Positions 23,995 through 35,743 of a DNA stretch of 64,000 nucleotides are shown here, piece by piece. This stretch comes from Calcarisporiella thermophila CBS 279.70. Lineage: Eukaryota; Fungi; Calcarisporiellomycota. Every line of letters starts with the position of its first letter. Within the stretch, counting starts at the first letter, position 1. The notes beneath the pieces are model-generated. The model did not search any database. It was not told where the DNA came from and was given only the letters and a program-made list of their open reading frames with translations. The translations under genes and the position numbers were made by a program. The stretch covers positions 499,140 to 563,139 of the forward strand of contig NW_027192204.1 of NCBI RefSeq assembly GCF_041956535.1, written 5' to 3'.

Positions 23995-25104
23995 CGAATT
24001 CTTTTTATCGACTACTTTTATATTCTCTTCTCAAATCTTAGGTTTTTTTTTTTTCTATTAACTTTTCTTGCATAACCTTCGCCCTCTTCCCTCTCACCCA
24101 TTCTCATACTTATGGCCTTGTCATATTTCGTTTGTTTTTAGAATCCTAGTATAGTTTTCTTTTCCATCTCCTCATAATGAAGGACTTTTCGAATGCCTAT
24201 TCTAACTGCACTAAACTCTCACCGCGTAATCATATTAACAAGTTTGGAGGGCTATCACAGGCATAGAATGCGTGCTCCGGAAGATGAGCAAGGACTTGCA
24301 GCGACTGGATTTCAGCGGTCATTATGTAGACATCTCGCATTATTCAAACTAAACCCGCGTGTTTTCGTATCAATCGGGTATTAAGGAACGTTCTCTAAAC
24401 TTAATGTTCCTTAGAGAGAGGACTATTTGCTTTCCGCCTGCAAGATATTCCGCAGGCTTTTTGATGAATAAAATTCCTGGTGTTAAGCAAAAACCGGTGT
24501 GTACGGTGGACTTTAGTCCACAACATTAGGGTGAATGACTCTTCCGAAACAAAGCAGAGGCTGCATAATAACCAGTTTTCCGATGACACATTTCATAATT
24601 CAAATGAATATCGCAGATAATCGCAAAGTACCAAAACGAGACGACCTGGTCTACAATGTAGGAGAGTGGCCCCCTTCATCTTCTCCGTTAGCACTTGATG
24701 AATTTTTAAATATTACTACAAGGATGGCTGAGTAGAGATAGACACCTGAATTAAAAACAAACAGGCTAGCGCAGTTCGATTAAAAACGGATTAAATAGAG
24801 TAATACAAACAAAATATCGATTGGAACCGAAAATTAGTGATAGCTTAGATTTTCATTGTAATATCGAGATTTCATCGCCCAAGCTATTAATATTTTCGTG
24901 AGAACAAATTTGGAGTATTTTTAAATAAAGTTTAGAACCTAACCTAGCTAATTAATATTACCATTTTCTTCCGCGAGATCCTAAGGTCTCGACAGGTTAT
25001 GTTTTCCTTTTATTATTGCTTCTACTGTTAACTATACTTTTCCTTTATTTACACTAGTTATAATATTCAACTATATACCCTTAGTGAACATTAATGTCGG
25101 AGCT

Positions 25105-28100
25105 ATGGGGTCATGTGGGGATGAGAACTATCGCCGGGAAACCGCCCATGGTTGATAATTTTATAACATAAATATATTTGTATTGCTATTTTACTGAGCA
25201 AAAACAATTGTTTAGGTCAAGGCGGTCAGTTACTTATCAGTTCAGCTTTTAAGCAAAGCAAGCAGATGACGACCCCCAAAAAGGTGTTGCAAAATCAATC
25301 CATAGCCGACCCCAGTATATTGCCGAAGGGTACTAGTGAGAATGAGCAAGACGACGCCGTAGGAGAGGTAGATATTCTGAAAATCAATGCAATAAGTGAA
25401 GACCTCAAGGAATCCAAGGATTTCGAGTGCAACTTGAAGAACTTGAGTACTGTAGCTCTGCAGCCAGATGAGTTTGGGCAAGAAATCGCAAAAGTTATTG
25501 ATGAGAATGAGCAAATTAGCATCGTACCAGCCAATTTTTACAATGAGCCAAAATCAAAAGTATGCAAAGAGCAAGTCGATACAGAGATGCATGACGCCTC
25601 TCCTGGGGATCTTCTTTGTGTATCCTGTCGTCCTTTAGCACTTCTTGCGGATCGAGATCCATTGAAGCCCTCTCCTCTATGCGCCAACTGTCTCAATAAA
25701 CTTTTCCCGCCCATTAAACTGAGCAAGAGTTCCATAAAAACGCAACCGACAAATGAACCGGTTGCTAGTGCCATATGCGAGTCTTGTGGCACACAGAGTC
25801 AGCTGTGCGAGATAGGGGTTCTTAAATTGTGCGCAGAGTGCGTATCACTCTTTGATATGAAGCAACGACGCACCCAAAGAAACCTGATCAGGAAAGAGGA
25901 TATACCGGTATGCAATACGCCTTCACAGGTTAAACAAGTGAAGAAGCGGCCATCTCCAGCAGAAACTAAACAACCCTTAGTCTCCGAACAGGCTCATCCC
26001 AAGAAACGTCTGCAGCTCTCTACCCCAAAAGAAGCCATCCCCTCAAATCCCGAAAAAACGCCACATCAAATTAGCACTACAGGTGCCTTCCTTACCCGCA
26101 GTACTGCAAAGCAGCTCGCTGGCCCGGGTGGATTTGAACCCAATCCCTATGATTACGAATACCGCCAGCGAGTTGAAGTTCTTGGCTTAGACAAGATCTG
26201 GTATTGCGCACGGTTGGTAGCGATGCAGGGTGGAAAGTTACGTGTACACTACAAGGGGTGGTCAAGTGCAGAAGATGAGTGGGTACCGATGGGAAGCCCG
26301 CGGATAAGAGTGTGCCAAGATCAAAATGGATCACTGACGGAGGAAGAAGAGGCTAATGAGAATAACGTTTTTAGGGTGGATGAGGCTGGAAAGGAGAATA
26401 AGAGTGAAATGTTAGAGGCTAATTCGCCTTTGGTTCGAAGAGGACGTGGAGGAGGGCGTGTTCGTGGTAGAAGACGTTCGAGGGGGCGAGGCCTTAAAAC
26501 GGACACTGGATGCAATCGAGAGCCCGAGAGTAGAAGAGGGAGAGGGCGGGGTCGAGTTGGTAGACCGCCCAAGTCGCTTTCGCTTTCTTTTCGTACGTCT
26601 AGTCCTTCTCAATCCACGCCTCCACCATCGAGCACAAAAATCAATACATTGTCAGAGAATTTCACCACGACCGGTGCATTTATGACCCGTCGTACTTTGC
26701 GTCAACTTCAATCTAGCGACATGACGACACAGAGCGGTTTCGAGTTCAATTCTCGGGGATTCTTCCTCTTGCAGCGTGTAAAAATCCTTGGGATGAATGG
26801 CGTGTGGGATACTGGCACACTGATTGCCATGCACCAAGGCCGGGTTCGTATACGGTTTGACGGGTGGGATCGCTCCTATGATGAATGGGTGCTTGCTGAA
26901 AGTAGGCGAATTCGTGAGCTGAGCGAGGAAGAAGCACTCGCAGATATGCCCCCTGAGATAAATTTGGAAAAAGAGAAAGAGGCTGAAAAAAGGGAAGAGG
27001 AGGAGAGGAGGAGGATAAACACTGTACTGGAGAAAGGAATCGATGAGACTGCAAAAACTCTAAAAGAAATAGCCGGGCTAAGAGAAAGGCAACGTCGTAT
27101 CAAAAAGCATCAACACCACCTGATTGAATCAAAGCCATCCAAGCAGCCTCACGAAGAAGTTAGTGAAGACTACACTACCACGGGCGCTTTTATGACCCGT
27201 CGTGCCATCCGAAAAATCTCAGCCGTTGATGCACTCGGTTTTCGTCTCAAACAGCGCATTCAGATTCTTCACATTGATAAACAATGGTATGATGGTGTCG
27301 TGCAGTCTCATCGCCGAGGGAAAATTAAAGTACATTATCGCGGCTGGGAGAGGCGCTACGACGAATGGATCCCGGCCGATAGCCGTCGGATTCGACTTAT
27401 TTATGATGAGGCGAATGAGGTGCGTATCGGCGACTATAGCGATGATGAGTTTGCTGCGGAGGAGAGCAGCTCTTCGGATTCGGAAGTCCAGATGGAATTC
27501 GATGAGAACGATGAATTTGATGAGATAACTTTTCGCCGTAGACCGGGGCGACCGCGGAATCAGCGCCGTGATTTAGACAGATATATTGCTGTTCGACGAC
27601 AACGCGGTCGAAAGTCGAGGAAGAGGGGAGTAAGGCGACGTACTCAAGGGCAGAAAGTGATCGACGAAGAAGAGCAATATGAAAGCGAGCAGGACGAAAA
27701 TCTGGAGGAAAGCGAAAAAAATCTCGTAATGAGCTTCTGGCAGTACATTCAGAATCGACGTGGCCGCCCCACCGACTCCAACTTGCCTGCGGTGAAAAGT
27801 GACGGAATGTGGCGGTATCTGCGCGGCGGCTTTTTAGAGGATATTCGCCCAAGCGATTTGGCAGCTATTCCTGCTGAGGGCAAGCGAATTGAAGCACAAG
27901 ATCGCTTCGAGCAATGGCGACCAGCGACGTTCCTCGAAATACGTGGGCAACGAGCTCTCGTTCACTATGAAGGACTTGCTCATTTTTATGACGAGTGGAT
28001 TCATCTTCGAAATGACCGATTAAGGGTTGCGCCGCGCCCTCTAGTGGATGATGCTCCACAACGGCCGCGTCGAACGCGTAAAGAAAAGGAGGAGGTGGAA

Positions 28101-31100
28101 GAATTGGAGTATGTTGATGAAAATCAGTCTGATGCCGAAGGTAAACTCTTGTTTAATTTCTTCTTGTGGTGATATTTATACTCAAACTTTTATGCGAATA
28201 AGCTGGCGATGAATGGCGTGTATACTGCAATCGTTGTCGAGTGGTTATTAAACACTTTAGGTTGGTAGTGACCACGGAGGTATAATTTAACTCGGTCCCT
28301 TACGTTTATTTTAAAAATTTGATATAGATACTACTGCACTTATTGCGAGAAGCCATCGGCCGGGGACGACTATGAGAGTTTTGAGCTCTGTCTTAATTGT
28401 TTCTCTAATGATTTCCCTTTCTGGCACCAGCACCCCCGTTCCTCCTTTGCGGCCCAGGCCATTGTTGAGCTGGATTCTTCGGAGCAAAAGAAGCCCACTA
28501 GAGTTGTAGGCGAGGTGGTTTCAACCTACGAAAAAGATGGCTTTGATACCGATTATACAGAGGATACGGAGCCGAGCATTATTCGCCCTGGTGTGGTCCT
28601 TGGTTCTGACCAGGGCTATCTCTATCTTCAGCAATGGCGTAAGCGAAAGATATGTGCATTTTGCAACGACGACGACACCTCAGTCCTGGGCGAGTTTGTC
28701 GGCCCATATCCCTTTGTAACCTGCGTTGTTAATCGCAATGGTCAAATTCAGAAGAAATCGTTTTGGGCCCACGATGCGTGCGCGAGATACTCCCCAGAAG
28801 TACTTGTTTCAAAAGAGGGAGAGTGGTATAACGTCTCCGTGGCATTAAGACGTGGCCGGGCGATGGTACTTATAAACCGCGTTGATTTTCAATGGTCGAT
28901 AATAATGAGTATTGTTGTTAGAAATGTGCCGCCTGTCGAGATAAAGGGGCCACCATTGGGTGCTTCGAGCCAAAATGCAACAAGAGCTACCATATTGCAT
29001 GCACAGAGAAGCCCCTCTGGTTCTTCGAAGATGGGGTTATATTCTACTGCCCACAACATGAGGCACTCTGCAATAAAAATGGTGGGTTTTTAGATCAAAT
29101 GACAGAGATTTTGCCATTTAGTCTTGCTGACATTCTTTTCTAGACGCTTACGAAGAGCTTTTCAACTGTGATGTGTGCAACGTTAAATTACAAGAAGGTA
29201 CATGGTACACATGTACCGGATGCGAGACTTTCTTTTCTACATTTGATTTGTGTAAAGAGGTGAGCACTGCATGCTGTACTATCACTTCCCACCCGTAATA
29301 GATTAATGCTTGCTATAGTGCTTCTCGCAGAAATTCCCAACTGACCACCCTCACGATCAAGACTTTTTCGAAGAAACATGTTAGCTGTTTTCCTCTCGAG
29401 ATTCATTGAACTTTTGTAACTGTTTTTGTTTTTTATAGCTCTAGATATTATAAAGGAACTAGAGGAGGAGCGAGCTGCAAGCATTGCACGTCAAGAGGCC
29501 ACGAAAGGAACTGCTCCAGGTTGCATTGAATGTTCTCGAGATATATATGGCTTTTCTAATAATAATATTTTCTTACGCAATTCTAAACAGCCCAACGGAA
29601 GAAGAGTCTATTTCCAAAGATATCCCGCAAAAAGTCAAACAATATTCATTGCTCCTATTGCTGGGCCACGACATCGGCTTGCTGGCGTAAGGGATTCAGC
29701 GGAGTGCTCATGTGCGAGGCCTGCTTTAAAATGGGGCTTTCCGAACAAGATATTGATCCGCTTGGGGACACTTCTCATCCCGCGGTGGCGGGCGGTTCCG
29801 ATGATCGCTATGCGGCGGCCATCGAGGATTACGCTCATACCCCGTATTTGACAAGAATGTATTGCGCGGCCGATAAATTCGATGACGCCAAATCTCGGGC
29901 ACTCTATCTTGACACGTATGGACCCGCTGAGCACCAGCTGTTTTCGCTACCATTTTCAAGCAGCTACTTCGATATCCCAGGGAGAGCTCCGCGATGGGCG
30001 ACCCATTCCGGCACAGGTGAGATCAGCAGTATCCTTACTAGACTAGATGATCTCCAAACTTAATCTCTATTTTAGATTACCATGGCACTTGGCTCCCTCA
30101 AACTGTACGGCGTACTTTACTGCGATTCACGAGAAAGAATGAAAAGATCTTGTCCAACTTTCTTGGTCGAGGTTGGTGCTTTTGCTATAATTAGTATGCA
30201 TTCTTATTCCCAATTTGCAACTTTTGTATAAATATGCTCCCAGGAACCGATGCGATTGAATCTTTTCTGCTGGGAAGAAAGTAAGTGGAGGTTTTCCAAC
30301 CCATTCATTCGTGACCAATAGACCTCACATAACAAACACGCATACAGATGCTGCGGAGTGGATATCAATCCGGCTGCAGTAGGGCTGTCTCAGCGCAACT
30401 GTTCTTTTGCAATACCCCAGGACCAAGGTATCACTGCCGAGCATCGCCCTATAATAGTGCAAGCCGACTCGCGCAAATTGACTGGCGCACTATTTGAGGA
30501 TGAGGCATATGACCACGTTCTCAGCCATCCTCCTTATAAAGACTGTGTTATTTATTCAACCCATATCGAGGGGGACTTGTCTAGGTAACCCCTTGAATTG
30601 ACTCCGCGGTATCTGCCCCCTAGACTCATTCCTCGCTATTATAAAAATAGCTTCTCTAGTTTGGAAGAGTTCCAAGCCGAAATGGACAAGGTTATTAAGG
30701 AGTCTTGGAGGTAAAGCAGCGTTTTTAAATCCTGTGGATTCGAGTTAATATTTCACACGCGATCTAGATTATTGCGAATGGATCGACGCCTTACGCTGGG
30801 CATTGGTGATAATCGAGAGCGTTGCTTTTATATTCCCGTCGGCTATAAATTGATCCGACAATACATCGATAATGGTTTCGAGCTAGAAGAGCTGGTTGCT
30901 AAGAACTGACCTCTATATTTGACCCCTGCACTTGGTATTGACGACCTTTTCTATTTCTCAGGTGGTGAAGCGCCAGCGGTATTGTAGTGCATTTGGGCTT
31001 GGTACCTACTTATGCGTTCAGTTTGATTTTCTTCTCTTCACGCACGAATTCATCGTCACCTTCAAAAAGATGGAACCAAGCGATGTCTTCAAGTATACCC

Positions 31101-32199
31101 TTTGCCAAAGTAATTTCAGGCTAATATTAGCGACCCCCTTTCTGGCATCACATATCTCTTATATTATCTTAGACGCAAACTGGAGCGAGTTCGTCAAAAT
31201 CACGCGTACTCAGCATGAAATCCCATCCTCTCCCATTACACGGCATAGTGTCATCATGGGCACGGTCTGGACCTTCAAACCTACCCCAGAGTACTCTTTT
31301 GTCCAGCTCTGCTCCTCTAGGATGGTTGAGCGGTTCGGAAAGGACGCGACCAATTGTGAGAAGATCAGCTTGGAGTTTCTAGTCCCCCAGGTAAGGCTTC
31401 AAAAGCTGCAATATTAGGGTTGCATCGTCTAACACCATTATTGGACAGGATAATAAGGACAAGAATGGTCAAGCAAAAGAGCAGAGCTTCGCAAAGGATA
31501 CAGACGAGCCTCTGTCTGAATACGAGAAGAGCCGTTTAGAAAGGATCCGGGAGAATAACCAGATGCTACTCTCGCTGGTATGTAGTGCGGCATCGATATG
31601 TAATAGACAGGTGTATTGATAGCACATTTCTACCCTAGGGATTGATCTCCGAATTGAGCGAAGAATCCGACGATGTGAGCCACTATCTCATCCTCGTTTC
31701 CAAACCGCCCCTCCCCCCCCCAGCGCCCTTGACCATGATCTTGGTTCCGCATGTCTCAAATCAGTTTATGGATCTTGAACACGTTGACAGCTATCGAACG
31801 GCCATATGTGTCCTTGCGGAGGAGGCATGCTCGCGCCTCTCTACAGGCGGATTTTTCATAGTAGGGGCACAAGACGCGCGCTCTCCACCTCCGAAATCTC
31901 GCCTATGGCCGCTCTCCATGCTACTACTGGAGGATATCGGTAAGAAGGTGGGAGAGGAAATGAAGCTGAAGGAGCTGGTCATCACAGTCCCGGATGGCTA
32001 TCAGCAGGATAGAAGGAAGATCACGTCCATCGACGAGCACGTGGAGGAAAATTGCATTCTGGATATGAGGGAGGAGGATGTGGAGCAATTGCCCATTGTC
32101 CATGTAAGTTTCGCCCTTGCTGTTCACTAATAGAATGGATCTATAAAGTCGTTTTTCTTTTTCAACTAGGCATGCTATCTGGTTTTCATGAAGATGTGA
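25105..32199 (+). CDS. Multidomain chromatin reader fused to an N6-adenine/N4-cytosine-type methyltransferase (4x Tudor/chromo-barrel, AT-hooks, ZZ, ePHD, ZZ, GATA, MTase, KRI, inactive MTase); about 18 introns
   Basis: Manual splicing with GT-AG sites keeps one open frame to TGA at 32197-32199. Key motifs: VHYKGW...DEW repeats; CNRC...YCTYC...LCLNCF; WAHDACARYSPEV...CAAC...GATIGC...YHIAC; CSYC-x17-CEAC; WATHSGTDYHGTW, NFLGRGT, GVDIN, SHPPY; YEKSRLERIRENNQMLLSLGLI. The start at 25105 is tentative (alternative 25266). Confidence 0.85.
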
Positions 32200-32477
32200 A
32201 CTTTTTATATACCACGATTATGGATAATATAATATAAAAATGGAATGCCCCTCAATTGCTCTTTTTCCCTTTAAAAAGATCGAATTTACGACTAATAGTC
32301 ACAGCCCAAGTGACTTTTCCAAACTATAAAAACCGAATGCTTAATATTCCGTGATTAACTGGGCTTATTGTGAGTGCAAACAGGATCCATCATCATATCA
32401 GTGGCCCATGCCCGTTCATCACTGACCTGTTTCCAAAGCCTTGCTCTTTATTGATAACAACTTCTGGTGGAATTTTC

Positions 32478-34186
32478 ATGGCGAAGCGAGGAACGCGTGT
32501 GCGTCAACGCTTACGGCGGCGACAGAAGAAACAAAAGGATTCTAACGACAATTCGGAGCGACGAAGACTCATTAATGAAGCTGCCGATCGTCTCGACCTA
32601 CAGAGACTGCGCATGCTGGCAAGAAGTGGCTCGGGCTTCTTGGATAACGCGGGTAGAAGGAGAGCTTGGTAACACTGCCTAGAGATGGTCTCATTGGAAA
32701 TACCATTCTAATTCTCGTGTTATAAGGCCTATACTCTTACGATGTTACCAATACGATGAAGACATTGATCCCATTGGTAATTAGAAAGCGCTTTCTCACT
32801 TTCTAGCACTGTTGAATGGCACACTGCTGGGTTTCTTATAGAAAAGCATCCAGAGGAATACCAAGTAGCACTAGACGTCGAACGATCTTTGAACCATTAC
32901 AGTGGGTGTATGACTACTTCCTGTGACTAAAATATGAGGATATAGGGCTGATTTTATATTTTTAATGTTAGGCCTGGAAGAGGACGAGAAACCTCAAAAG
33001 CGAAAAGAATTGCATGAAGTGATTATGAGTGTGCTGAGACGGCACCCAAAGTTGCATTACTATCAGGTACTCTCCACGCTATTATTCTGTTAGCCTAGAG
33101 GGCCACTAATACTATTGTATTCGCATCGCAGGGTTTCCATGATATATGTACGTGCTTTCTGCTTGTTCTTGGAAAACGCCAGGCAGTTAAGGCCTCCGAA
33201 CATGCTGCTCTCTTCTTCTTAAGATATCCTTTTAGTTTCGCATTTTGCTCTCTTTCTCTTCTCCACCTCTATTTTTTTTTGGATATATTCTCTTAACTAC
33301 CATGCACAGATGCTATGCTTGAGTCCCTAGAGCCCACCATGCGTCAACTTTCTCTCCTCATCTCCATTCTCAAACGAGAGGATGCAGAGATACACCGATT
33401 TCTAGAAGAGTAAATGTCACGAAGCCCTTAGCTTATAGCTTTCATTGGCTGACCCTGCTCTCTTTCTCTCCCACCCTTTCAGGTCAGAGACTCTACCCTA
33501 TTTTTGTATTAGTTGGATATTGACATGGTGTAGCCACGATTTACAAGCGCTCGACAAAGTGGCCAGGCTCTTCGACCTGTTTCTGGCCTCTAATCCCCTT
33601 ATGCCACTCTACGTGGCCTCCGCTGTATGTAATCTACTTTGCCCTTAGTCTTTTTTTTTTTCAAGCAATTTCACACTCTCGAGATATAGGTTGTGCTTAA
33701 CCGTAAGAAAGAGTTACTCCTGTGCGAGAAGGACAGCGCGATGATCCACTCCTTCCTGTCCAAGTTCCCCCAAGATGTCGAGGTGGATGAACTCGTCGCA
33801 CAAGCCCTCGAGCTCTTCTACCGGTATCCACCCCATAAACTGCAGCGAATATCAAAAATTGGCTTGGATGAGACGTAAATAGTTACTTTTCATATCTAGG
33901 AGGTAGAATGTGATCTAAGGAGGCTCCGTCCTATTTCTATAGATCTGCCGTCAACACCTATGACAAGCTTTGGTTTAAACTTGACCCACAAGCGAAACTC
34001 GACCGGGAGGCCGTGATGAACATTCTCTCGCTAGCACCTGCAAACCGTCGGCCGAAACGGCTGGCCTTCTGGGCGCCTCAGTCCAGCAGTGTGGCAATGG
34101 CCTTTATTGCACTGTCGGGAGTGTCAACCGCTGCGGTACTCTTACTCATGGCCACGCAAATGCTTCGGCGTTCCTTGGAACCATAG
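32478..34186 (+). CDS. GYP8: TBC1D20/Gyp8-type Rab GTPase-activating protein with C-terminal transmembrane segment
   Basis: RRRAW|PILL, QVALDVERSL, LHYYQ|GFHDI, LRDAM, PYFCISWILTWCSHDL, RLFDLFLASNPLMPLYVASA, and a hydrophobic C-terminal anchor. Confidence 0.88.
33224..33307 (+). other. U12-type (minor spliceosome) AT-AC intron
   Basis: 5' end ATATCCTTTT; branch-like TTCTCTTAAC at 33288-33297; 3' end CATGCAC. Removal gives in-frame ...LFFLR-DAMLE.... Confidence 0.85.
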
Positions 34187-34292
34187 ATACCATGGAGTTT
34201 TACTTAATGGAACATGAAGGGTTTTATTAATATAATATAAATAAACGTTTTAAAAAGCCACTTCCAACCCAGCAATAAGCACGGGATCAATT

Positions 34293-35743
34293 TCACTTGG
34301 TATGAATGAATTCTCTAATAAGCTGTGTGAAAGTCTCTGCGTTTTCTTCCTGGACAAAATGCCTTTCCTGCTCAAGCTGCACCAGCTTGAGGTTTGGATA
34401 CTTGAGCGAGATATTGGCGAGATTCATCGTGGAGTCCAGCACAAAATCCTTATTGCCCTATTCACGCCAGAGAGGGGTGAGTTAGTTTCGGAAGCCCTCT
34501 TCTCCTTCTTTCTTCTCCCCGAAAGGAAAAAGCTTATGTTACCCAAATGATCATGGTTTTGTACCCGACCGGATTGATCTTGCCCTTTTCTTCGTTTTGC
34601 GGGAGCACGTCCCCCGGAAAGACGATGTTGCGATAATAGTTGATGGGGGGAGTGAGGTCGCCGAAAGACTGGAGGGCCGAGAGATACGGCTCCACCTCCT
34701 CAGGCCTCAGGTGGAAATTGGCCCGGCGAACCATCGAGCTCCCGAATGAGGTTGCATAGAATTCGGGGAGTGGATAGGGAAGCGAAAAGATGAAGACGTA
34801 GAAAAACAGAAGAATCTGCTTCAGGACAATGCACATGCGCTGGATCAGCGCGTGCCGGTAAGCCTTATCGGATGCAAATCGGATCACGTTGGGCAAACTC
34901 TTCAGCTCGCCAAAAGGCGCGCGAATATTGTACCCCAACAGGTCGAGGGCAGGTGCGTTGCATACAACGAGCCGTTGCATATAGCCCTTCTCTCCACTCG
35001 TCTCGCGCACCCACGAGTCTCGCCCCGCCATCGATGCCAAGATGCCTCCCCAGTCGTGGGAGACTATGGTGTGCGCCTCGCCTCCGTAAAACTGGATCAC
35101 ATCGCGAATATCGGCGATAAGGAGGTCGAGGGTATAATCACGCAGGTGCTTCGGCTTAAATGAGCCTCCATATCCGCGCTAACAGTAAGAGTAAATCCAA
35201 AGTCAGCGTTGGCCATAGTAAAAGAGAAGCAAGGGGGGGATGTTCCGATATTTACAAGGTCAACAGCCACAAGACGAAAGCCCTCGTCCTTGAGTGCCTC
35301 CAGCTGATATCTCCACGTGTACCAGCACTACGGATACATCGAGAGTTAGTATGCTTAGCAGACGTGCAAAGACAGGTCGTCCTTTGCCGCAATTCTCATA
35401 CTTGTGGGAAGCCATGCAGGAAGAGGATTAACGGACCATTCGGATCTCCGCCCTCGACCACATGGAACTGCTTGTTGTTCACCGTGATGTATCTGTGTTT
35501 GCCGTAGGGCAGTTCGCCGCTGGTTAGGCTCTCTCTAACTGTGTCGCGATTTAGTAATAATTCCTCGGGTCTTGGATAGCAACGAAGAATTCGACAACAT
35601 TTACCCTTTGAGCGGTCCACCCGCGGCAATGGATTGTGCCCTTTGCACACGAGCAGAAATGCGCGGAAAAGGAAGAGGGCGTAGAAGCAGCTGCCGACGA
35701 ATTGGTAGAGCAGCCGACGAAAAAGGTGCTCCATTTCCGTCAT
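34293..35743 (-). CDS. Alpha/beta-fold hydrolase, epoxide hydrolase (EPHX3/4)-like
   Basis: LILFLHGFPQ|CWYTWRYQL, VAVDL|RGYG, nucleophile motif SHDWGG, PINYYR, WGNKD, and the catalytic-His region HFVQEE. Confidence 0.88.

Follow-up and report, generated by a model that had tools for sequence, protein, structure and literature searches.

A probable U12-type AT-AC intron in a TBC1D20/Gyp8-type RabGAP gene from an early-diverging fungus, Calcarisporiella thermophila

Introduction

The gene for a TBC1D20/Gyp8-type RabGAP in Calcarisporiella thermophila is interrupted by a short segment that can be excised in frame in two ways. The question raised by this locus is whether the segment is an AT-AC intron of the minor, U12-dependent class or the nested GT-AG intron found in the public gene model. 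TBC1D20/Gyp8 is an ER-anchored, Rab1-family GTPase-activating protein. We analysed the gene within a 64-kb stretch of genomic DNA, referred to throughout as the window. The original prediction for this locus had assigned the AT-AC intron to an early-diverging fungus, and the organism is one: C. thermophila belongs to the phylum Calcarisporiellomycota (NCBI taxonomy). Its genome (strain CBS 279.70, JAZGQU) is described in PMC11393059, which does not discuss Calcarisporiella introns.

U12-type AT-AC introns are established in animals and plants (Hall & Padgett 1994 and Tarn & Steitz 1996, as cited in PMC10639083). In the fungi, minor snRNAs were reported in 2008 from Rhizopus, Phycomyces, Mucor and Batrachochytrium (PMC2396436), and in 2023 minor introns were counted in Rhizophagus irregularis (205) and Basidiobolus meristosporus (249) (PMC10639083). 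A 2024 survey found few to no minor introns in Mucoromycota, yet snRNAs in Bifiguratus, and named Neocallimastix as well (PMC11347168). Neither C. thermophila nor an intron in TBC1D20/Gyp8 is mentioned in these three surveys, and our literature search returned no paper that links TBC1D20 to minor introns or treats the introns of Calcarisporiella. Since minor introns of early-diverging fungi are already published, the intron described here is a further case of a known type. Its value lies in a correction to the annotation and in the addition of one well-conserved fungal U12 intron.

Results

Structure of the RabGAP gene

The gene was delimited by an exon-by-exon frame check, in which exons and split codons were handled separately. 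It has nine exons, runs from ATG to TAG and encodes 386 amino acids; all nine exons are free of stops, and the split codons are consistent throughout. The features of the locus are as follows.

32478-34186, plus strand: TBC1D20/Gyp8-type RabGAP gene
32478-32668, 32727-32776, 32842-32901, 32972-33066 and 33132-33223, plus strand: exons 1 to 5
33308-33409, 33483-33624, 33690-33874 and 33943-34186, plus strand: exons 6 to 9
33224-33307, plus strand: probable U12-type AT-AC intron of 84 nt, which splits the Arg codon AG/A in phase 2 (sequence and frame check)
33224-33232, plus strand: 5' splice site ATATCCTTT, the predicted recognition element for U11 and U6atac
33235-33309, plus strand: nested GT-AG alternative (GTTTCG...CAG, 75 nt), the junction of the public gene model
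33288-33297, plus strand: TTCTCTTAAC, by direct reading of the sequence
33290-33297, plus strand: predicted branch-site element CTCTTAAC (consensus TCCTTAAC)
33294-33296, plus strand: in-frame TAA
33306-33307, plus strand: 3' terminal AC of the intron

The seven remaining introns of the RabGAP gene are all GT-AG and 58-73 nt long, and those of the upstream gene, mapped from the public model, are GT-AG as well, which agrees with the claim of the original prediction that the other introns are of this type.

The protein family was assigned from searches that used single exons or the public model as query. The RabGAP-TBC domain (Pfam PF00566) scores 22.4 bits with exon 7 alone and 81.7 bits with the TBC part of the public model. 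Both catalytic fingers of the TBC domain are visible, the Arg finger as LDVERS and the Gln finger as YYQG, the latter directly preceding exon 5. The nearest full-length relatives carry the source names gyp8, rab-GTPase-TBC or TBC1 domain family member 20. With exon 5 as query, human TBC1D20 is the sole match in the PDB, at E = 0.31 for an exon-sized piece; exon 6, also short and exon-sized, gives nothing meaningful in the PDB or Pfam. The two fingers and the LRD motif that follows the Gln-finger helix are shared with human TBC1D20 and yeast Gyp8 (PDB 4HL4 and 4HLQ). A hydrophobic C-terminal stretch read from the sequence (VAMAFIALSGVSTAAVLLLMATQML) may correspond to their membrane anchor.

Splice signals of the 84-nt segment

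Direct reading of the sequence from 32400 to 34400 places the first intron bases, ATATCCTTTTAG, at 33224. The flanking exons read ...GCT GCT CTC TTC TTC TTA AG / A GAT GCT ATG CTT..., so that the downstream exon begins with A followed by GATGCTATG. Near the other end of the segment, CTCTTAAC departs from the branch-site consensus at two positions, one of which is compatible with a G-U pair; the U12 candidate described below contains a complementary sequence, GUAAGG(A). The predicted branch adenosine is at 33295 or 33296, which puts it 11-12 nt before the 3' splice site. Ten bases, TACCATGCAC, separate the branch element from the intron end at 33307, and they contain no pyrimidine tract. The original prediction had described just this arrangement (an 84-nt AT-AC intron with a U12-type donor, a branch element 10 nt before its end and a terminal CAC), and each element of it is present in the sequence. 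The segment must be removed, because retention would bring translation to the TAA at 33294-33296; in keeping with this, no open reading frame in the ORF list crosses 33224-33307.

The intron was typed by consensus matching and by comparison with shuffled sequence. The 9-mer RTATCCTTT occurs twice in the 64-kb window against an expectation of 1.12, and is not rare when taken alone. The composite pattern ATATCCTT-N40-70-YYTTRAC-N7-15-YAC has a single match in the window, exactly at the coordinates of the intron, and did not occur in any of 100 shuffles. The other RTATCCTTT match (31493-31501, minus strand) was rejected as a chance occurrence: it falls, in antisense orientation, inside an upstream-gene coding exon (31446-31577, plus strand), and no branch site was found downstream of it.

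Choice of the splice junction

Both junctions preserve the reading frame, and they differ in the protein that they yield. Excision of the AT-AC intron gives ...AALFFL, then R from the split codon AGA, then DAMLES..., and the product ...AALFFLR-DAMLESLEP... restores the F[FY]LRDAML[ED]S motif of orthologues. A multiple alignment with Umbelopsis, Zychaea, Basidiobolus and Thoreauomyces shows exons 5 and 6 abutting without a gap, separated by nothing but the split Arg; the orthologous proteins read FYLRDAMLESMDP, FFIRDAMLDSLDP, FFLRDAMSDSLEP and YYLRDFMTLTLQ at this point. The fit to the LRD motif claimed in the original prediction is borne out by this gapless collinearity.

The nested alternative that the original prediction described, with a GTTTCG donor and a YPFN insertion, is also real. 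Its product, LRYPFNAM, adds three residues and changes the conserved D to N, so that in the multiple alignment the public model opens a three-column gap at YPF and sets N opposite the conserved Asp. This indel is the only gap in the TBC core relative to orthologues. In BLASTP searches with the TBC part of the public model, the alignments to Umbelopsis (46% identity) and to the environmental protein P0058 (43%) both carry a three-residue gap here. P0058 reads HFLRDGMLDSIDP at the junction and is encoded by a single uninterrupted 351-aa ORF on a 1188-nt contig, which for that reason is most likely an mRNA. Donor strength alone cannot exclude the GT-AG alternative, because several accepted donors in the same gene, such as GTGGGT and GTACTC, are weak too. 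The comparison of proteins nevertheless leads us to judge that the nested GT-AG junction is wrong, or at most that of a minor isoform.

The same intron in other species

We retrieved the genomic loci of nine homologues and mapped the proteins onto the DNA by exact peptide blocks. Six of these loci carry an intron of the same kind, listed here with locus and coordinates, length, branch-like element and the distance from that element to the 3' end.

Umbelopsis sp. PMI_123, L006:1767-1862: 96 nt, TCCTTGAC, 17 bases
Zychaea mexicana, L007:1812-1951: 140 nt, ACCTTAAC, 13 bases
Radiomyces spectabilis, L010:1712-1804: 93 nt, TCCTTGAC, 13 bases
Endogone sp., L011:1210-1326: 117 nt, GCCTTGAC, 28 bases
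Funneliformis mosseae, L012:1289-1360: 72 nt, ACCTTAAC, 10 bases
Basidiobolus ranarum, L008:1735-1808: 74 nt, TCTTTGAC, 10 bases

All six introns split the same Arg codon (phase 2), begin with ATATCCTTT and end in AC, and each has a YCTTRAC-type element 10-28 nt before its end. With C. thermophila included, the donor 9-mer is identical in seven of seven species and the terminal AC is common to all seven introns. Intron interiors cannot be aligned across the seven species, and conservation is confined to the splice signals.

These introns bear directly on the junction of the public model. If that model were correct, a U2-type GT-AG intron at 33235-33309 would be removed, the protein would read ...FFLRYPFNAMLESLEP..., and the presence of ATATCCTTT and CTTAAC would be coincidental. 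Such a junction keeps the frame and is the one in the deposited annotation, and other real donors of the gene are likewise far from consensus. Against it stand the loss of the conserved Asp of the LRD motif, with the only indel of the TBC core, and the orthologous introns themselves: the base after AC is G in four of the six, so that these four species have no AG acceptor and no counterpart of the GT-AG alternative, while all six keep ATATCCTTT...AC at the same codon. The deposited annotation also loses weight from its origin, since SnowyOwl picks among ab initio models (PMC11393059), an AT-AC junction was presumably absent from its options, and the same model makes a false gene fusion. We regard the public junction as very improbable.

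Dual-spliceosome alternative splicing is known elsewhere, and the two nested introns might compete here, U12 AT-AC against U2 GT-AG, with a pair of isoforms (LRD... and LRYPFN...) or regulated switching as the outcome. Either junction keeps the frame, and the ACAG 3' end, with an AG two bases downstream of the AC, is found in Umbelopsis and Zychaea too. Neither the GT at +12 nor the AG is conserved over the seven species, however, and the YPFN product breaks a conserved motif at a helix border, which makes competition of this kind very unlikely.

Taken together, the segment has an /RTATCCTTT donor, a TCCTTRAC-like branch site near its 3' end, and AT-AC termini whose use gives an in-frame, conserved product. 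On this comparative sequence evidence we consider it highly probable that 33224-33307 is a genuine U12-dependent AT-AC intron in the putative C. thermophila orthologue of TBC1D20/Gyp8.

Its distribution indicates that the intron is old and would already have stood at this codon in the ancestor that Mucoromycotina, Glomeromycotina, Calcarisporiella and Basidiobolus have in common. At the same codon and in the same phase, Allomyces macrogynus carries an intron with GT-AG termini (GTACGC...TTAG, L013:1140-1221), most likely the same intron after U12-to-U2 conversion. Protein-to-DNA mapping detected no intron at this codon in the chytrid Thoreauomyces or the green alga Micractinium. The simplest history would be an ancestral U12 intron that became U2-type in the lineage of Allomyces and disappeared from at least one chytrid. 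This accords with the published view that conversion goes from minor to major (PMC10639083), and a U12 intron so well conserved could serve as an evolutionary marker with which to trace such conversion and loss in the fungi.

Minor-spliceosome RNAs and proteins

We searched the 28.2-Mb assembly with Rfam models and obtained one full-length candidate for each minor snRNA.

U11 candidate: 53.1 bits, above the Rfam gathering threshold of 39
U6atac candidate: 47.6 bits, above the threshold of 33
U12 candidate: 44.4 bits, below the threshold of 53
U4atac candidate: 42.9 bits, below the threshold of 53

The four candidate loci lie at C6:999547-999746 (plus strand), C1:926673-926772 (minus), C11:412021-412144 (minus) and C2:193832-193964 (plus) of the assembly. 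In alignments, each of the four has an Sm site and a recognition box. The U11 candidate begins with AAAAAGGGC, and its AAAAGGG is predicted to pair with UCCUUUU of the donor. The 5' region of the U12 candidate, UGCCUCAAUCUAAUGAGUAAGGAUAAUA, contains the branch-site box and the Sm site. This candidate is 100 nt long and is without most of the 3' stem-loop, the shortening of which accounts for its low score. The AGAGA box is present in the U6atac candidate and the Sm site in U4atac. Duplex prediction gives a U4atac/U6atac pairing with a stem I of 10 bp and a stem II of at least 8 bp (UGUUGAUA with UAUCAACA), in which a base inserted in U6atac is matched by one in U4atac as a compensated insertion. 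The predictions also give U12/U6atac helix I and pairing between U12 and the branch region. The original prediction had expected minor snRNAs in this organism, and all four are represented: U11 and U6atac exceed their gathering thresholds, while U12 and U4atac fall below theirs and retain their functional boxes and partner pairing.

Proteins specific to the minor spliceosome are also encoded. A PDCD7/U11-59K domain scores 33.9 bits against a cut-off of 27, and the ubiquitin-like domain of SNRNP25/25K (Ubiquitin_4) scores 38.9 and 27.5 bits on two adjacent exons. The zinc finger of U11-48K (zf-U11-48K, PF05253) has no match in the genome, which is weak evidence of absence because the model spans just 25 positions. 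The candidates thus form a complete minor-snRNA set in a lineage outside the published surveys that we consulted (PMC2396436, PMC10639083 and PMC11347168).

The U6atac candidate has GUCGA in place of the donor-pairing AAGGA. Together with the short U12 candidate, 100 nt long and below threshold, this might be read as the mark of a decaying system, in which splice signals persist, the minor spliceosome is impaired, and the RabGAP gene is poorly spliced or a pseudogene. López et al. report that U6atac has AAGGA in Rhizopus and Phycomyces and that several other lineages with working minor splicing have a [GU]CCGA variant instead (PMC2396436), so the GUCGA box is not evidence of a defect. All nine exons of the gene are open and well conserved, the donor is perfectly consensus, U4atac and U6atac co-vary, and U12-like introns of both terminal types are enriched genome-wide (see below). 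Decay of the minor spliceosome is, in view of this, barely credible, and a working U12-dependent intron remains our preferred reading.

U12-like introns across the genome

The strict pattern ATATCCTT-N35-65-CCTTAAC occurs 16 times genome-wide against 3 for the reversed control, and the version with GT termini 8 times against 2. AT-AC introns would accordingly be at least as common as GT-AG introns among strict U12-like introns, on counts (16 and 8) that are small. The 9-mer ATATCCTTT has 686 matches in the genome and the reversed word has 415. A loose branch motif accompanies sampled ATATCCTTT sites downstream in 8 of 60 cases and upstream in 2 of 60; because downstream motifs are so few, the excess of the 9-mer appears to be mostly compositional, and we rejected an estimate of hundreds of AT-AC introns based on it. 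From these pattern counts, a defensible estimate of the minor-intron complement of this genome would be dozens.

Proposed splicing mechanism and comparison with known minor introns

By analogy with the established U12 pathway, the U11/U12 di-snRNP would bind the pre-mRNA cooperatively. The U11 5' end (AAAAAGGGC) would pair with the donor ATATCCUUUU, and the U12 box GAGUAAGGA with the branch site CUCUUAAC, so that the branch adenosine bulges out 11-12 nt before the 3' AC. The U4atac/U6atac.U5 tri-snRNP would join next, U6atac would displace U11 at the donor, and the intron would be excised between 33223 and 33308. The joining of AG and A into an Arg codon would then yield ...AALFFLR-DAMLESLEP.... 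We infer both the actual splicing in vivo and the order of these snRNP steps. The finding leaves the existing picture of the minor-splicing mechanism unchanged.

The C. thermophila intron resembles the U12 AT-AC introns of animals and plants in its /ATATCCTTT donor, terminal AC, lack of a pyrimidine tract and non-zero phase, and in having a TCCTTAAC-like branch site some 10-13 nt before the intron's 3' end. Animal and plant U12 introns depend on U11, U12, U4atac and U6atac, and C. thermophila has candidate genes for all four. It differs from them in the two departures of its branch site from consensus, in the GUCGA box of its U6atac candidate where theirs is AAGGA, and in its length, which at 84 nt is short like the compact fungal introns around it. 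C. thermophila belongs to the same region of the fungal tree as the early-diverging fungi studied previously and shares their machinery, and Basidiobolus and the glomeromycete Funneliformis carry the TBC1D20/Gyp8 intron itself.

Errors in deposited gene models

A search of 1.84 billion representative proteins with exon 7 (47 aa) returned a 100%-identical match of 2368 aa (P0001), which is XP_069250389.1 / KAL1919119.1 (VTP21DRAFT_2501) of Calcarisporiella thermophila. All of its residues map in exact blocks to positions 25094-34183 of the window. The protein contains ...FFLRYPFNAMLESLEP... (in longer context, ...AALFFLRYPFNAMLESLEP...), which corresponds to splicing at 33235-33309; as the original prediction anticipated, standard annotation mis-models the gene. 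Mapping of this protein, together with a domain scan of its parts, reveals a second error.

32104-32438, plus strand: false 335-nt "intron" of the public model

This false intron joins an upstream gene with MBT/chromo-like, ePHD and N6_N4-methylase (DNA methylase) domains to the RabGAP gene, and the public model translates the RabGAP 5' leader as protein. These genomes were annotated with SnowyOwl, which chooses among ab initio models (PMC11393059), and because it was limited to such candidates the AT-AC intron probably could not be modelled. XP_069250389.1 / KAL1919119.1 is therefore in need of repair at two points: one junction is wrong and alters a conserved motif, and two unrelated genes are fused. 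Pipelines restricted to GT-AG or GC-AG introns will go on mis-modelling such genes.

It is possible, if on balance somewhat doubtful, that annotation-based surveys systematically undercount minor introns in zygomycete-grade fungi, and that Calcarisporiella holds dozens of them, with AT-AC introns outnumbering GT-AG and a GUCGA-type U6atac. Among nine deposited zygomycete-grade orthologue models that we examined, six are either wrong at the intron or truncated by it (Calcarisporiella, Radiomyces, Endogone, Funneliformis, Phycomyces nitens and Spinellus), while those of Umbelopsis, Zychaea and Basidiobolus already splice at the AT-AC junction. The region is skipped or garbled in the Radiomyces, Endogone and Funneliformis models. 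The partial model of Phycomyces nitens starts exactly at DAML..., and that of Spinellus is garbled there too.

Mis-modelling of the AT-AC intron and its host gene

An AT-AC intron orthologous to that of the C. thermophila RabGAP gene is wrongly modelled in deposited proteins from three other fungi (coordinates are those of the fetched genomic loci):

L010:1712-1804, Radiomyces spectabilis, KAI8391521.1
L011:1210-1326, Endogone sp., RUS13455.1
L012:1289-1360, Funneliformis mosseae, CAG8674809.1

Models from Phycomyces nitens (KAI9029645.1) and Spinellus fusiger (KAI7864192.1) also appear to be truncated or garbled by the orthologous intron. The proteins underlying these observations are P0010, P0005, P0151, P0006, and P0009. 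The homologous locus of Allomyces macrogynus contains a GT-AG intron:

L013:1140-1221, GT-AG intron, termini GTACGC...GGATTAG

It occupies exactly the codon and phase of the AT-AC intron of zygomycete-grade fungi and is a candidate in-place minor-to-major conversion.

The deposited C. thermophila model, XP_069250389.1 (2368 aa, window 25094-34186, + strand), is a chimera of two genes joined by a false intron:

Window 32104-32438, + strand, false intron fusing the upstream gene to the RabGAP gene

The upstream partner is an MBT/SAWADEE/chromo-like + ePHD + N6_N4 DNA-methylase gene, and the RabGAP 5' leader (PCSLLITTSGGIF) is read as protein ahead of the true start at 32478. The architecture of the upstream gene, with reader domains and a bacterial-type methylase, is of interest in its own right.

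Minor spliceosomal snRNA candidates

The candidate loci in the genome assembly (G000) include:

L001:1501-1600 (G000 C1:926673-926772), - strand, U12 snRNA candidate, ~100 nt
L002:1501-1633 (G000 C2:193832-193964), + strand, U6atac candidate

In the U12 candidate the 5' half and the Sm site are both intact, but it scores below the Rfam gathering score because most of the 3' terminal stem-loop of the Rfam model is missing. The consensus AAGGA box of U6atac, the proposed pairing partner of the U12 donor, is reported as kept in Rhizopus and Phycomyces, whereas the C. thermophila candidate has GUCGA (within GAGUCGAGAGA); a [GU]CCGA variant is known in other lineages (PMC2396436).

U12-like introns across the genome

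The window holds a second RTATCCTTT match:

Window 31493-31501, - strand, GTATCCTTT, antisense, inside an upstream-gene coding exon

We rejected it as a U12 donor: it is a chance match, antisense in a coding exon and without a branch element downstream. Across the whole of G000, the 9-mer ATATCCTTT occurs 686 times against 415 for the reversed word, and introns leave most of this excess unexplained. Strict pattern counts gave 16 U12-like AT-AC introns (3 in the reversed-pattern control) and 8 U12-like GT-AG introns (2 in the control). The preponderance of AT-AC over GT-AG suggests an AT-AC-rich complement of dozens of minor introns.
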